A stretch of DNA of 64,000 bases from Antechinus flavipes (lineage: Eukaryota): the NCBI RefSeq assembly GCF_016432865.1, contig NC_067401.1, forward strand, positions 185,752,001 to 185,816,000, read 5' to 3'. Position 1 is the first letter of the stretch, and each line of letters opens with the position of its first letter. The notes below the pieces were generated by a model that was given only the letters and a program-made list of their open reading frames with translations, had not been told where the DNA came from and searched no databases. Position numbers and translations under genes: made by a program. Shown piece after piece: positions 25,589-32,900 of this stretch.

Positions 25589-27432
25589 GAAGTTTGTTTT
25601 GGATCTTGCCTATTTTCCACTGGGGCTGGCCAGCTAATATCTGCCCTTGCTCATTCACCTCTATTCAGCCTTTGCTATTCTTTCCCCAAAGTATTCAGCC
25701 TCTATTTCAACCTGAAGTTCCATACCTATTTGCTTGCTTAATTCTTATATTGATTCTTTCCTAAGTTTTCCTGAATTAATTTGGACTCATTTCCAAAACC
25801 ATTCCCCGACCCATGGCTCTCGTATCTCATTCTTTGCAAAGATTTAAAAGGTTTAGCTCTCTCCAGTATATAGTCTCATTGTCTAGCTTTCTGTAAAAAA
25901 AGCTTTTTTTTTTTTTTTTTTTTTGGGGGGGGGGGAGAATATGAAATGTCTCACTACTTGCATGAAGCCCATCATACTTCTCTCTCTAGGAAGGAATTGC
26001 CCTACTGAAAAAGGTCGGTGATATCTGAGGAAAAAAAAAAAGATGTAGACAGTAAAAAGATTAAAGTAAAAAGGTATCAGAAAGGACATCTTCTAGTCCT
26101 AACAAATCCTATGCAAATATCAGGCAGATGCTAACATAAGTCTCATCATATACAATCTGTCTTCATTCAGTTGGACCTACTGGGCCCCAAAAGGAGAAAA
26201 ACAATCTAATTGGTATGAATAGAATCTGTCATTCCACTCTGAGTACAAGTGATGGAATGAGAGAGATTCCAGTCATTATACCCACAATCTCTTCTCTTAA
26301 ACCTAGTATTTTAGTTATGTTTCCTAGAGTTTCTGGTTAGAATTCCCTTGGACTTCCTTGAGGTAGGAATGAAGAAAAGTCCTACCTTAAACAGAGTAAC
26401 ACTTGTGTATAAAGCCCTTACAAGAGTATGCTTTCCTCTAGTCATTGGTTATCACTGCTAGTTAAGAATGCCTCTCTTCTTTTTTTTCTAAATTGAGAAA
26501 AGTTACTCTTTTGATTAATAGTGAAATTGAGTGAAAAATAAAATTTATTTTTAATTATTTATGGTAACAACTTCAGCTACATCATTCTCTAATATAGAAT
26601 GCCTTACTTCAAAGAGACCCCAGTTCCTTTCCAGCCACAACTGCTTAAAAATACTATATAATGTATGTGGTGAGTCATTTCAAGGGCAATTTTAACTAAA
26701 TCACTTTGATTTACACACTGATTTTAGAACCTAATCTACAAGTTGAAGTATGACTATACTATATAGCTGCAGCTCATAGTCAAGGTTAGTCAGGATTCAG
26801 TCATTCATCAGCATCATCAGATGTCCAGGTCACTGACTGATTCTTCCTGGTAGTCATCAGAATTAAGACCCATAAAATATATGTAATAAGATCAGTGGAA
26901 GAGACAAAGATAGTTGCCTAAGGAGAAAAAAGAAAAAACAAGTGTTAGAATGAAGAGATATTTAAGGCTTTACACAGTATACGGCTCCAGGGCTATTCTT
27001 TTGAGTCCCTTCATCTGGGATACTTGTAATATTGTTATGGGTAGGTCTTATTTCTGCAACACGAAGGGAGGAATGGTGGTTTTGATAAAGCTTTTTTCTC
27101 CTAGTGGCCACAAAATGAAACAAGTATTTAATAATAGTCATCAAATGCCACTCTACCTGGAGCTTTCTAAAAAGATGATATTAAGTGTTTTGTTGTTTAC
27201 TGTGTTTCTTCCTTCCCCCTCCCCCCCCCCCCCCCCCCAAGTATCTAGCCCAGGTTGTGTTCCAAAACTTTATGGTGGTAAGAGTGGGAGTGGGAGCTTA
27301 CAACTTCCTTTTCCTCAGTTCTTGCTTACCCATCCCTGGGCACTTGAGGAGCCACTCCCCAAACATGTCTTTAGCTAGGGAAGGACTTTAGTCTCTATAG
27401 AGGCTGAGAGGTTAATCAGTAACTTTTACTTT

Positions 27433-27660
27433 AGGCAACTAGATGATTTCAGTGGAGAGTGCTGGACTTGGAATCAGGAAGATCTGAGTTCAAAGTCAGC
27501 CTCAGATACTTATTAGTGGTGAGATCCTGAAAAAGTCTCTCAACCTCAGTTTGCTTTTTTGTAAAATGGAGATAATATTACCTACCTTATATTGTGAAGA
27601 CCAAATTAGCTAATATATGTAAAAAATTCTGCAAAACCTCTAAGTATTATAAATGCTAGC
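27433..27660 (+). mobile_element. MIR/MAR1-family SINE in pseudogene intron 7
   Basis: GAGTGCTGGACTTGGAATCAGGAAGATCTGAGTTCAAA...CTCAGTTT..TGTAAAATGG core. Confidence 0.8.
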
Positions 27661-28696
27661 AGTTTTACTCTACCACCTGAGACACAGATATCTATTCCTA
27701 ATATCCTCAGTATTATTTCCTAGTTCCAATATCTTAAGGAACATTACTTTTCCAAACTGAATTGGAAGGGCAGAGCCAAGATGTCCCAGGCTTTCCTTTT
27801 CTTCTGGGATAGGCAGAGATTAAAGGTCAAATCTCATGGATTCCACACCTATGGGAACAGAGTATGATGAGAATTTGCCTCATCCTTTAATCTTCCCACC
27901 CTCAAATTCTTTTAATTCTCCTAGGATATTACCCCTTACCTCTTCAATCATCAGACAATGCTTTTTAAAGCTCTCCTTCATCAATTACATGAACTTGCAG
28001 AAACTGGATACATCCTATAGTCCTGGGGGTGAGAAGCTTTTTCAGTAGGACTGGGAATTCCTATACTGAAATTGGGCAGGATGGCTAACTAATGAATCTA
28101 AATGAAAATTATCAGAAAGCAAAGGATTAGAAGGGAAGAGAAGCATTTAGAACAAAAATATGGCTACCAGAACGGTTCCACCTCTGCCCCCATGCTCTCT
28201 CAAATTCACTATATGATTTTACCACTTCTTCCTCATTCTTTATTCCTAATCCTAACAATGGATTGCTCTTTATCCCCATCTCCCAAATACCACCTGCTTT
28301 ATTCTCTTCCTTTTTCTTGTATTATCCTAAATATATATAGTCCTTCTGCAGACTTGTCCTCCAATTCTCTTTTTGGTAAAGATCTGACCAGTAAAGTATT
28401 GCTCTCCTAATTTGTCCAAAGGCCCACCTTTATCTTGCCATTTCAACCTAGGCCAAAATATTCAAGGAACCCAAGAGATGTAACTCATGCATGTCCTCAT
28501 AGAGCAGTTGTACCACAAAAACTTAGCATATTCTGGAGAAAGATGGGGAAAAGGCAAACAGAATATGAGTGAACTGAGGATATTATTAAGAGTAGGTTAG
28601 GGTAGCACAGAAAAACAGGATGCACAGAAACAAAGAAGCAACAAAGGAATGTGAAAGGCCTGTTGCAGGCCAGGAAGAGGGATCCTTTTCAAGCAT

Positions 28697-28860
28697 ATTT
28701 TTATTTATTTCATTAAACAATTACATTTAAATTTTTACTTAATGTTTTAAAAAATGTTAAGTTTCAAATTTTCTTCCTCCTTCCTATTCTTTATCCACAG
28801 TCTGAGAAGGCAAGCAATACGATATCAATTACATGGGTGAAGTGATGCAAAACATAAAGA
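28697..28860 (-). mobile_element. Old marsupial L1-type 3' end fragment
   Basis: T-rich tail on the left; GAAGGCAAGCAATACGATATCAATTAC...ATGCAAAACAT motif. Confidence 0.55.
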
Positions 28861-29199
28861 GGGAACTTGTTCCTGGCAGGCTGATCTGGGATGAAGTATG
28901 AACAGATTTCTTGCCAAAACGAGTATGAGGTTCCCATGGCCCACTACAGAATCTGAAAGAGAAAAGAAGCTTTAGGGAGCAAGAAACAACATCTGGTTAA
29001 TCAAGTCCAAAGCAACGATGGTCAGACTCCAGACTCAAAAAAATTTTCTCAAAATTTCAAGGTCTCACTTCCTGCCCATCACAAATGGGTCTCTGAAAAC
29101 ATTGCAAAGAAAAGGAAAAATAGAAAAGAACAAAACCCCTTAAATTCTGAACTTAAACACTCAAAAGCATATAAAAGAACACAACAGAAACCCCAAATT

Positions 29200-29665
29200 C
29201 TATACATTATTTAAATTTTGTACTTTACTTTCAAAATTCTGTGCTTTTTCCCCCCTAAACTTTTTTCTGTACTTTTCTGTATATTTTTAAAGTTGCCCTC
29301 TTTTGCAACTATTGCTAACTTCCACTGCCTTCCAACTTAAAAAGCCAATAAGCAAAAGTAAGCAAAATGAACATCAACACAATGGCCATGTCAAAAAACA
29401 CATGTCTGTACCTTGTGCCTGTCACCTCTGTCAGGAACTGGGCAAAATATGCCTTAGTTTTTCTAGGTATGGTGGATCACTGCTTTAATCAGAATTCTTA
29501 AGGATTTCAAAGTTTTCTTTATAATCCTGCTGTTTTTGTAATGCTCATTCTGTATTAGTTGATAATACCCAAGATTAAATGATAGCATCTCTTTCATAAT
29601 TTCTTACAATGAACCAACATTCTCTTTCATTTTATACATCACAATTTGATCAGTCAATCCTAAGT
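29200..29665 (-). mobile_element. Old marsupial L1 3' end fragment
   Basis: Degenerate TTTCTTACAATGAACCAACATTC...ATACATCACAATTTGATCAGTCAATCC, similar to the L1 ends at 16 kb and 19 kb. Confidence 0.55.
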
Positions 29666-30169
29666 AATAATCTAAAATATTCTCTTAAAGTCTAATTCTT
29701 CTAGTTATCCCTTTTATTCTTTTATTTCCCCTTTAAGGCTCAAAAAATTACTTTTGCCCTTGACTATCCCCACCTCACCCTCTACAGCCTACATTTTAAT
29801 CAATTCTAAGGTCTTCCCCAATTCTAAGCTGGGTCTGCAACGTCTAAAACCATTAGGGAGCTCCCCTATGTGCTTTAGCCTTTCATATTTTTGTTAACCA
29901 ATCAACCAAATCAAATTTAATGAGTACCTATTAATGTTAATCATGAGAGGTATGGGAGATACAATAAAGAAACTGAGAAAATCAAGCTTTTTAAACATAA
30001 CTTGAATACAGTAATGAAAATTATATGTGGTATTATTAATTCAATAGGAAGAAAAAAGAGATCAGGCAACTTCATGAAACCGGTAGCATGCAAAGATGGG
30101 ATTTGAACAGGAATTCCAGCATGATCAAAGGAAGAGAAATAGGAAAAAAGGGTCAGAGAAGGGAAAGTG

Positions 30170-30300
30170 CATTTAGTAAACATCTACTATATATCAGGCC
30201 CTGGGCTAAGTACTTTACAAACATCTCATTTGATTTTCACAACAATTTATTAAGTGCTATTATTGTCCCCATTTTACATTTGGGGAAACAGAAGCATTTA
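30170..30300 (-). mobile_element. MIR fragment
   Basis: ATCTCATTTGATTTTCACAACAA...CCCCATTTTACATTTGGGGAAACAGAAGCA. Confidence 0.7.
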
Positions 30301-31119
30301 AATGAGAACACTGTGAAATGAAAAGAATACTAAGATGAATGAAATGGAGGGTACATGCCAGGAAGCTGTATATAAAAAGTGAAGCCAATTATGCGGGTCA
30401 AGAGATGGGTATAGGAAGCTTGAACTTGTTTCAAGAAGTGCAAATCTACAGTTTGGAAGAATTTGGCTTTGGTGAACAGCTTTTTTTTTCTCCTCCATTT
30501 ATTTGTCTTGGGGTACCAGTTAGATAGATTCTACCTGTTATTACTGCCTTTCTACTTATATGAATTTGATTTTTTTCCAAATCCTCTTTCAATGAAAGGA
30601 GCGGCACTACTCCAAGTTACGTATTGCTTTTTCTCCCAGGCTGTTGGTGTTCGAATCCAAACAGTCTTTAAATGCCTCTTCTTACCTTACTCAGCCCAGA
30701 AACTGAATCTACTTTCCTCTTCAAAAAGGTGGGATTTCAAGAGAGTTCCTTAAAGAAGACGGGTAAAAGACCCAAGGCGCTTAAGTGCTCAGAGTTACGT
30801 AGAAGGGATACTTTGATTCTCACTAAGGATTACTTCTAAAGCAGGTAGTGGCCCTCCCATGCAAACTCTAATAACAAGATGGAGAAGATTTGGAGACAGG
30901 AAGTATTTTGCTATAGGGTCAGCTCCAGTCAAACTTCATATACCAATACAAGAGCTCTCCTAACGCTCCAATACCAAAGCCTGTTTCTAAACTGTGCCTC
31001 TCAAACCGAGTTCAGTGCTGGAAACCATGCAGAGAGCCAGAAGTCCCGTATTTGGGGCCCACTTTACCACACCTCCTACCTCGCTTCCTCATTGCTCTTT
31101 CATCTGCACCATGACCTCT

Positions 31120-32900
31120 GAGAAAGCCCAAAGCGTCGTTGGCCCGGAGCAACTGTAGCATCTTTGTCCATTACTTGGCTTCCTTCCAGCTACAAGTCGC
31201 AGGTTGATGGCGTCAGGGAACTCGATCTTGACATGGGCCGACTAATTCTTCCTTCCTCGGTTCCAAGGCCCCTCTGAACATCATTGTGACGTCACCGGTC
31301 AGCTTCGGTAACGCAGGCGGTGCCCAGGCAAGACTGGGGTCCTGATCTTTGATTCTTTTCTAGAAATCTGAAATGGGATTTGGCGTGGGGAGGGACTCAA
31401 GAATTAAAATTCAAGGGTGCGGGGAAATACTTGGAAGGATCCTCGAACCTACCCCTAGGTGCCCACGAAAGGAAGTTATTACTGGAAGGAGTACAAGCAA
31501 ACGTAAAGATACAAGAGAGAAGTTGCCTGACTTTTGAACACCCAGCTTTTCTTTGAGCGGGGGAGGGGTGCATCTCAGTAGGTCACGCGGAAGAGCGTGA
31601 AAAACCGTTGGGGGCAGTTGAGGTTAGAGGGTGGGAGGAGGGGCGGCGCGTGCGCATCGCACTACTATATGCTAAAAAGCAAAGATCTAGGCCACAGCCT
31701 GAGAATACGTCACTCTTCTAGTCCCGCGCGCTTCTCTGATTTCCGGCTCAGAAGAAGTCGGGGGTGGAGGTAGAAGAGAAACCAATCCCCTTCCACCGAG
31801 ATCCAACCTGACAGTTCCTTTCCGGGGAGTGATTTAGTAGCTTCATTCTGGAGCTTGCGCAGTATAACCGGATGGGAGGCGATAAGTCCGAATGTAGCCT
31901 CTACCACCATTGCTGAATGTGGGTGGGTCGCCGGAAGTGATGTCAGAAGAGGAGGAGGCAAGGGGGAGAGGGAGGACTCTAGGCGGTAAAATGGCGCCTG
32001 TCAGGCCGGGGGATGTGGCGGCAGAGGCAGCGGCCCTGCTTCCGAGCGGTTAAGGCATCCCCCGAGTTTGGGGGGGGGGAGACCAGCTTTAGGCTTGCGC
32101 CTCATATTTCGTGGCTCCCCCTCCCCTCTTTCCGCACTCTCTCTCCTCATTCCCAGCTTCGCGCGCCCCGCTCTCCCAGCCCTTCCCTTCCTCCCGCCGG
32201 CTTTCCTGCACTCAGCCACCTAGTGCGCCTGCGCCGCGGGCTTCCCTCTTCCCTTCCCCCTCCCCCCCAATCTGCCCCCTTCCCTCGGTCCAAGGACCCT
32301 ACTCTAAAATATCTGCTCTTCATTTAGCACGTATCTTCCCTCCTTCTTTCAGAGTGCGCCTCCCGCGAGTCCTTAAGGACTTGCCACATCTTTCCTCTTA
32401 CTTCCTTGGAGACATTTCTCCCCTTTGGGGAGGACTTCTTTGAGCTGCATACCCACCGTGTTCTAGTTGTAGCTTGTTAGTGCTTAAACCCTATACCTTT
32501 CCCCTCCCAACTGCGGGAGGGGGAAGGGGAGGCACTGCCCCCTGGGGGCCTGGCTGAGCCGGGCCCCGGGGCCCCCAGGGCCGTCAGGGCCAGGGGCGTC
32601 GGGATGATGAGGACTCAATGTCTCCTGGGTCTGCGCACCTTCGTGGCCTTTGCTGCCAAGCTCTGGAGCTTCTGCCTGTATCTTCTGCGGAGACAGGTCC
32701 GAACGGTGAGACTGGGGTGTCAGGAAGCCGGCTGGAGCTCTTCCCCCCTTCCTTCTTCCCCCTCTTCTCCCCCCCCCTCCCCGCTGGATTTTGGGAGGAA
32801 CGAGAGAAGCAATCCGGAGTAATTGGTGGGCTATTTTCGTTGGGTCTAGGACAGGAGTTGGGTAAGCATGTATATTGTAAGATGGCCTGCTGGGGGAAAC
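31120..32900. promoter_or_regulatory. CpG-rich bidirectional promoter region shared by pseudo-ELP5 (-) and CTDNEP1 (+)
   Basis: Dense CpG; CRE TGACGTCA 31287-31294; NRF1-like GCGCGTGCGCAT about 31647; ETS CCGGAAGT 31931; YY1 AAAATGGCG 31988-31996. Confidence 0.75.

Follow-up and report, generated by a model that had tools for sequence, protein, structure and literature searches.

The ELP5 gene of Antechinus flavipes is dead at its ancestral locus and was very probably replaced by an intronless copy made early in marsupial evolution

Does a marsupial whose ELP5 gene has decayed at its ancestral site still possess an ELP5? The question is raised by a 64-kb stretch of the Antechinus flavipes genome (64,000 nucleotides, analysed as a whole and called the window hereafter), in which the interval between CLDN7 and CTDNEP1 holds the remains of this gene. 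ELP5 belongs to the ELP4/5/6 ring of Elongator, the complex that modifies the wobble uridine of tRNA. An earlier note on this DNA had described ELP5 as a long-dead pseudogene at its ancestral locus, and had left two readings: either a retrogene located elsewhere replaced its parent, or the lineage runs Elongator without ELP5. The description as a pseudogene is borne out here by synteny, exon layout and lesions, and the data support the first of the two readings. Very probably, the parent decayed where it stood, and a retrocopy of its spliced mRNA, made elsewhere in the genome of an early marsupial, stayed intact and took over.

An intact, intronless ELP5 gene was found in Antechinus itself, on a chromosome other than that of the window, at CM028221.1:177,178,521-177,179,390 (protein P0147). 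Its 870 bp translate without interruption into 289 residues, and its surroundings are free of other gene calls for 10 kb. The intronless gene of the Tasmanian devil (855 bp) is located on LR735558.1, a chromosome record other than that of the dead locus of this species (LR735557.1). In all five species examined for it, the gene is exactly as long as its coding sequence (Antechinus, 870 bp; devil, 855 bp; bilby, 825 bp; opossum, 870 bp; wombat, 870 bp), and each of these five loci lacks a further gene call within 10 kb. The five loci represent four orders, namely Dasyuromorphia (two loci), Peramelemorphia, Didelphimorphia and Diprotodontia. Annotated ELP5 proteins, 274-289 residues long, exist for 11 marsupial species of the American and Australasian lineages (bilby, wallaby, wombat, brushtail possum, Antechinus, opossum, monito del monte, devil, Sminthopsis, Gracilinanus and Petaurus). 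These proteins were reached via the exon 3 piece of bat ELP5, which led in an exhaustive search to bilby ELP5, and then with the bilby protein as query; those of devil, Sminthopsis, Gracilinanus and Petaurus are cluster mates of proteins matched by the bilby query. No multi-exon marsupial ELP5 was present among the proteins listed by this query.

The intronless marsupial proteins score 57-59 bits on the Pfam family Elong_Iki1 (PF10483), the cutoff of which is 22.5 bits, and so pass the threshold of the family. Their alignment with the ELP5 of echidna and of placentals extends over the full length, at 60-65% identity. The intronless copy is under purifying selection: between Antechinus and devil, the synonymous divergence (dS) is 0.23 and the non-synonymous divergence (dN) 0.031, giving a dN/dS of 0.136 (p = 1.7e-12). 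Furthermore, the flanks of the retrogene are collinear between these two species over 20 kb, with 90.7% identity. In the protein tree, marsupial ELP5 forms one group (support 96/100), the terminal branches of which are short except for that of bilby.

Some of the intronless genes have peculiarities of their own. Bilby ELP5 (P0134; 274 residues) is an outlier, with 62.6% identity to the Antechinus protein as against 80-95% for the other marsupials, and with a terminal branch of 0.81 as against a median of 0.083. Its composition also deviates (p < 0.001), with Ala, Arg, Gly and Pro abundant; the divergence may stem from GC-biased drift or from relaxed constraint. The devil retrogene (L008:10001-10855) has an in-frame deletion of 5 codons relative to Antechinus and Sminthopsis, and hence 284 residues instead of 289. 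For the sugar glider (Petaurus breviceps papuanus; P0266), the same 'ELP5-like' protein is recorded under two accession numbers on two contigs, and the duplicate entry may reflect either an additional copy or another haplotype.

At the ancestral locus, remnants of all eight ELP5 coding exons (8/8) lie on the minus strand in the CLDN7-CTDNEP1 interval, collinear and with introns between them, from position 31161 down to position 26818 of the window. The earlier note had them ordered in this way, and a frameshift-aware alignment to Antechinus ELP5, which recovered all eight exons in order, agrees with it. The remnants occupy the same slot as the working gene of outgroups: echidna ELP5 is flanked by CTDNEP1 and CLDN7, spans 7.2 kb and has 8 coding exons, and bat ELP5, of which the gene was partly fetched, stands head-to-head with CTDNEP1. 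The GABARAP-anchored loci of a finch, a lizard and a fish stopped short of ELP5. The parts of the dead gene are as follows, in window coordinates.

31162..31340, minus strand: 5′ leader and promoter of the former ELP5 gene, common to it and CTDNEP1 in a head-to-head arrangement; carries TGACGTCA and GTGACGCCATCA.
31116..31161, minus strand: exon 1 remnant (MLQLLRANDALGFLR); 46 nt, as expected from the retrogene; ATG and GT donor (GTCATG) kept.
30813..30867, minus strand: exon 2 remnant; two in-frame stops (TAG 30838-30836, TAA 30832-30830), about 2 codons deleted; aligns with residues 12-35, including the WEG..LL motif.
30638..30718, minus strand: exon 3 remnant; 81 nt without insertions or deletions, three in-frame stops (30709 TAG, 30691 TGA, 30682 TAA), donor changed from GT to GG.
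28914..29116 (bounds approximate), minus strand: exon 4 remnant; three in-frame stops (29065 TGA, 29035 TGA, 28972 TAA), several frameshifts, both splice sites damaged.
28360..28527 (3′ bound approximate), minus strand: exon 5 remnant; three in-frame stops (28523 TAA, 28448 TAG, 28430 TAA).
27988..28097 (3′ bound approximate), minus strand: exon 6 remnant; one in-frame stop (TAG 28091-28089).
27748..27848, minus strand: exon 7 remnant; 101 nt, one in-frame stop (TGA 27836-27834), acceptor AG and donor GT kept.
26818..26917, minus strand: exon 8 remnant, including the original stop codon; one in-frame stop (TAA 26865-26863), a 1-nt insertion and a 6-nt deletion.
26507..26817, minus strand: former ELP5 3′ untranslated region (UTR) to the poly(A) signal region; homology to the 3′ flank of the retrogene.

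The similarity of these segments to ELP5 is significant, a point on which the earlier note had made its claim depend. A chain of collinear matches to Antechinus ELP5 scores 152.5 bits, as compared with 49.9 +/- 17.2 bits (maximum 86.9) for 111 other 4.5-kb segments of the window and 16.5 +/- 13.4 for shuffles of the region. At the level of residues (asterisks denote stops), the exon 1 remnant is identical to residues 1-15 of Antechinus ELP5 at 8 of 15 positions, including the marsupial-type start MLQLL. The exon 3 remnant, RGK*IQFLG*VR*EEAFKDCLDSNTNS, aligns to KGEQVHVLGCEVSEEAFREGFDSNTN; the exon 4 remnant has NVFRDP for DVFRDP and ALDLINQMLFLAP*SFFSLS for AVDSLSWLLLHAPCSALCQAL; and the exon 5 remnant, VFVVQLLYEDMHELHLLGSLNILA*VEM, is 50% identical to VRVLGLLHEDVHGPGPLGALGSLAQVEV. 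Exon 6 had previously been placed by its position only; a match in sequence was found too, between IH*LAILPNFSI and THWFSILPDFSL of Antechinus or TYWFSILPNFSL of opossum. The exon 8 remnant starts with HIFYGS, changes frame and continues with NSDDYQEESVSDLDI*, aligning to QIFYEPDAEDYLDQEDPDDDLDV*. Among ten stop-free pieces compared with the Pfam profiles, the sole match was that of the exon 7 piece to Elong_Iki1 (profile positions 255-275 of 292, E = 0.0026), at 17.8 bits and thus below the cutoff of 22.5. The same piece shares 63-67% identity with marsupial ELP5 proteins (tblastn E = 9e-7 to 7e-6 for a search within the window), and no match was found between it and solved structures. Unlike the members of the ELP5/Iki1 family, the copy in the window cannot encode a protein, and the exon 7 piece alone gives this sub-threshold match.

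The exon-intron layout of the working gene has also been retained. Echidna ELP5, rebuilt from its locus, has coding exons of 43, 61, 81, 203, 170, 126, 101 and 103 nt. The boundaries of the remnants coincide with the seven echidna introns, and exon 3 (81 nt) and exon 7 (101 nt) are of the same length in both species.

The disabling lesions amount to 14 in-frame stops, together with frameshifts and lost splice sites. All 13 stops that had been reported before (13/13) were confirmed as stop codons of the minus strand at their positions; the additional one, in exon 6, replaces a Trp of the intact proteins. The donor of exon 3 indeed reads GG (30637-30636, in GGGAGA), and the damage previously described at the splice sites of exon 4 was recovered, since the expected acceptor lacks its AG and the expected donor its GT. 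The frameshift that had been noticed in exon 8 is seen as the 1-nt insertion and the 6-nt deletion when the remnant is compared with marsupial retrogene DNA. Overall, 9 of the 14 splice dinucleotides are kept in place, while the exon 2 donor and the exon 5 acceptor have displaced GT or AG only. In the Tasmanian devil, the dead-locus sequence, which reaches ELP5 exons 1-3 only, has the stops of exons 2 and 3 in common with Antechinus. These stops are therefore not assembly noise, as had been held from the Antechinus sequence.

How the intronless gene arose can be read from the comparison of the two loci. The copy is without all seven parental introns, and its DNA shares 69-79% identity with what is left of exons 5, 7 and 8 (exon 5, 69% over 65 nt; exon 7, 73.5% over 83 nt, E = 6e-9; exon 8, E = 3e-6, with visible insertions and deletions); for the exon 6 remnant, identity is 73.5% over 34 nt. 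Downstream of the coding sequence, the parental 3′ UTR aligns with the 3′ flank of the retrogene at 70% identity over 151 nt (E = 9e-13), and this homology breaks off about 37 nt beyond the AATAAA of the parent. Upstream, an end-to-end alignment of the 220 nt preceding the ATG of the copy with the 179 nt preceding the dead ATG gave 65.7% identity over 175 nt, with a score that was matched by none of 500 dinucleotide shuffles (0/500) and none of 436 GC-matched segments of the window (0/436); strict local alignment of these 5′ flanks, taken alone, was not significant (score 27, control maximum 30). In a four-way alignment of the dead locus and the live copy of Antechinus and devil, TGACGTCA and GTGACGCCATCA are invariant. 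The homology in the UTRs is thus bounded by the ends of the transcript and the introns are absent, as in a processed transcript. The 1 kb upstream of the copy is CpG-rich (observed/expected 0.89) and is surrounded by an AT-rich, CpG-poor desert.

The decay of the parent was then placed in time. With echidna as outgroup, 61 changes were assigned to the parent branch (26/16/19 at the three codon positions) and 17 to the retrogene branch (5/1/11). Since the changes of the parent are evenly distributed over the codon positions and those of the copy are few, the parent has drifted free of coding constraint during most of the period that followed the duplication; it is altered at 33 of the 88 residues that are conserved in all the ELP5 proteins compared. 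Seven residues separate marsupial ELP5 from the echidna and placental proteins, and at these the parent has the marsupial state four times (4/7) and the outgroup state never (0/7), which indicates that the copy postdates the split from placentals. The parent branch, of about 0.2 changes per site, is about 3.6 times the per-lineage distance between Antechinus and devil introns (identity between window and devil, 89.3%). The split among dasyurids dates back approximately 20-30 million years, so that the parent would have drifted neutrally for about 70-110 million years. Such an age is in keeping with an intronless gene that occurs in American as well as Australasian marsupials.

We propose the following sequence of events. 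In an early marsupial, a spliced ELP5 mRNA would have been reverse-copied into a gene-poor site on another chromosome, the retrocopy beginning some 175 nt before the start codon and ending at the poly(A) site. The intronless copy would have stayed intact and assumed the role of ELP5, and its takeover would have freed the parent, which then decayed. The copy is predicted to be expressed and to work in Elongator. A single retroposition event in the marsupial stem would be the parsimonious origin of the intronless genes.

Two observations weigh against this scheme. At the retrogene locus, neither a poly(A) tail nor target-site duplications are recognisable, the end of the 3′ homology being followed by an A/G-rich stretch only; such a loss would be expected after tens of millions of years, but these hallmarks are lacking all the same. 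Moreover, orthology of the insertion site was shown for Antechinus versus devil only, and the single origin therefore rests on parsimony. Intronless copies could accordingly have arisen several times in separate marsupial lineages and not once in the stem, and the protein tree does not separate one event from several because the phylogeny of the parent genes would likewise mirror that of the species. However, all five marsupial loci, from four orders, are intronless and have no other gene within 10 kb, the proteins listed by the bilby query included no multi-exon marsupial ELP5, and the neutral decay of the parent extends over a branch that far exceeds the distance between Antechinus and devil (by the factor of about 3.6 given above). 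We consider repeated origins unlikely, and favour a single retroposition in the stem.

The other explanations concern the remnants themselves. The idea of a functional multi-exon gene whose stops are errors of sequencing or assembly found no supporting point and deserves practically no credit: the stops of exons 2 and 3 recur in a second species, the Tasmanian devil, whose assembly is independent and has no protein-coding gene called upstream of CTDNEP1 at the dead locus; the changes on the parent branch are even across codon positions; the exon remnants have a G+C content of 42%, as against 62-69% in the intact genes; and the neighbouring exons are clean. The copy at the ancestral locus being dead beyond doubt, by its stops, frameshifts and lost splice sites, the lineage might instead have truly lost ELP5, and run Elongator without this subunit or dispensed with it. 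This is highly improbable, however, because three dasyurids and eight further marsupials have an annotated intact ELP5, the intronless copies pass the Pfam threshold, and Antechinus flavipes itself carries an intact copy that has evolved under constraint relative to devil (dN/dS 0.136). An Elongator without ELP5, the second reading that had been left open, is thereby refuted, and the replacement of the parent by a retrogene is upheld by the intact intronless ELP5 found off the ancestral locus in dasyurids and other marsupials, under purifying selection. Loss of ELP5 was rejected for Antechinus, Sarcophilus and Sminthopsis, in all of which an intact copy is present. The remnants could also have been retained as a non-coding transcript or as a regulatory element of CTDNEP1. 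The exon remnants 1-3 are 93.9% identical to devil and the introns between them 89.3%, 9 of the 14 splice dinucleotides are in place, and the 5′ leader is conserved, though it is also the promoter and first exon of CTDNEP1. However, the excess of identity in the exons is marginal and rests on 165 nt (window 30638-31161), and exon 3 has a 23-column gap relative to devil. In addition, at about 0.17 changes per site some 70% of the dinucleotides would survive by chance, which the proportion of 9/14 fits. A non-coding afterlife of the remnants thus appears rather improbable, and decay of a parent replaced by its retrocopy accounts for them best.

The success of the retrocopy may, tentatively, be due to the parental core promoter and leader that it would have carried along (about 175 nt, with the CRE-like TGACGTCA and the motif GTGACGCCATCA), although we hold this to be possible rather than probable. 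Expression of a housekeeping type would then have been available from the start, and the parent would therefore have become redundant at once. If true, marsupial ELP5 would be a clean natural case in which an inherited promoter drove an essential gene to relocate.

Retrocopies that replace a lost parent, or orphan retrogenes, are represented by RNF113A, MARS2 and TRMT12 in previous surveys (Ciomborowska et al. 2013, PMC3548309; Carelli et al. 2016, PMC4772013), and according to the second of these (Carelli et al., PMC4772013) 9 of 10 orphan retrogene families use CpG-island promoters. Marsupial ELP5 resembles them in being an intact intronless housekeeping copy at a new site, under purifying selection, CpG-rich upstream and with a nonfunctional parent. 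It differs from them in that the carcass of the parent is still legible exon by exon at the ancestral locus, and in that the copy seemingly brought about 175 nt of parental leader and did not depend solely on a foreign promoter. With unitary pseudogenes, the remnants share conserved synteny, a retained exon-intron layout and many disabling mutations. Unitary pseudogenes, however, are dead without replacement, whereas a working ELP5 paralogue exists here; the function was therefore not lost, and the gene was relocated. ELP5 is absent from the main text of PMC3548309 and PMC4772013, the ten-family table of PMC4772013 lying outside that check. Literature searches combining ELP5 or Elongator with marsupial, loss, pseudogene, retrogene or retrocopy returned nothing relevant. 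Marsupial ELP5, an orphan retrogene accompanied by the remains of its parent, is thus of a known kind, and the example is apparently unreported.

Since marsupials retain ELP5, nothing here indicates an altered modification of the tRNA wobble position. The pair formed by the live copy and its legible parent can be used for dating the swap and for testing whether promoter elements borne by the transcript aided the takeover, and the parent can be used for measuring neutral decay over about 100 million years within a conserved gene block. The case is also a warning for genome scans: a gene that is dead at its ancestral locus should not be counted as lost until retrocopies have been sought.

The gene block of the window comprises YBX2, SLC2A4, CLDN7, the ELP5 remnants, CTDNEP1, GABARAP, PHF23, DVL2 and ACADVL. 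The earlier note had described the eight neighbours as intact, and this was checked in part: it holds for PHF23, and open frames are present for GABARAP exon 1, CLDN7 and CTDNEP1 exon 1. The large exon of PHF23 in the window is identical to the annotated Antechinus flavipes protein at 282 of 282 residues, to that of devil at 280/282 and to that of Sminthopsis at 279/282. Over 22 kb, the window is 93.7-95.2% identical to the devil locus.

Devil CTDNEP1 is annotated with 254 residues, while the lizard and echidna proteins have ten fewer (244). The range of this devil gene begins at the start codon of the dead ELP5, on the opposite strand (L001:1139, corresponding to about 31165 of the window), which indicates that the first exons of the two genes overlapped head-to-head. 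Within the former intron 7 of the dead gene, the minus strand has a run of about 22 uninterrupted G (window ~27217-27240). The same intron contains a core of a MIR-like short interspersed element (TATTATCTCCATTTTACA...ACTGAGG; window ~27440-27600), which is also found near the Antechinus retrogene (L006 8790-8827 and 9287-9310); its presence at both loci produced small DNA matches between them that are spurious.

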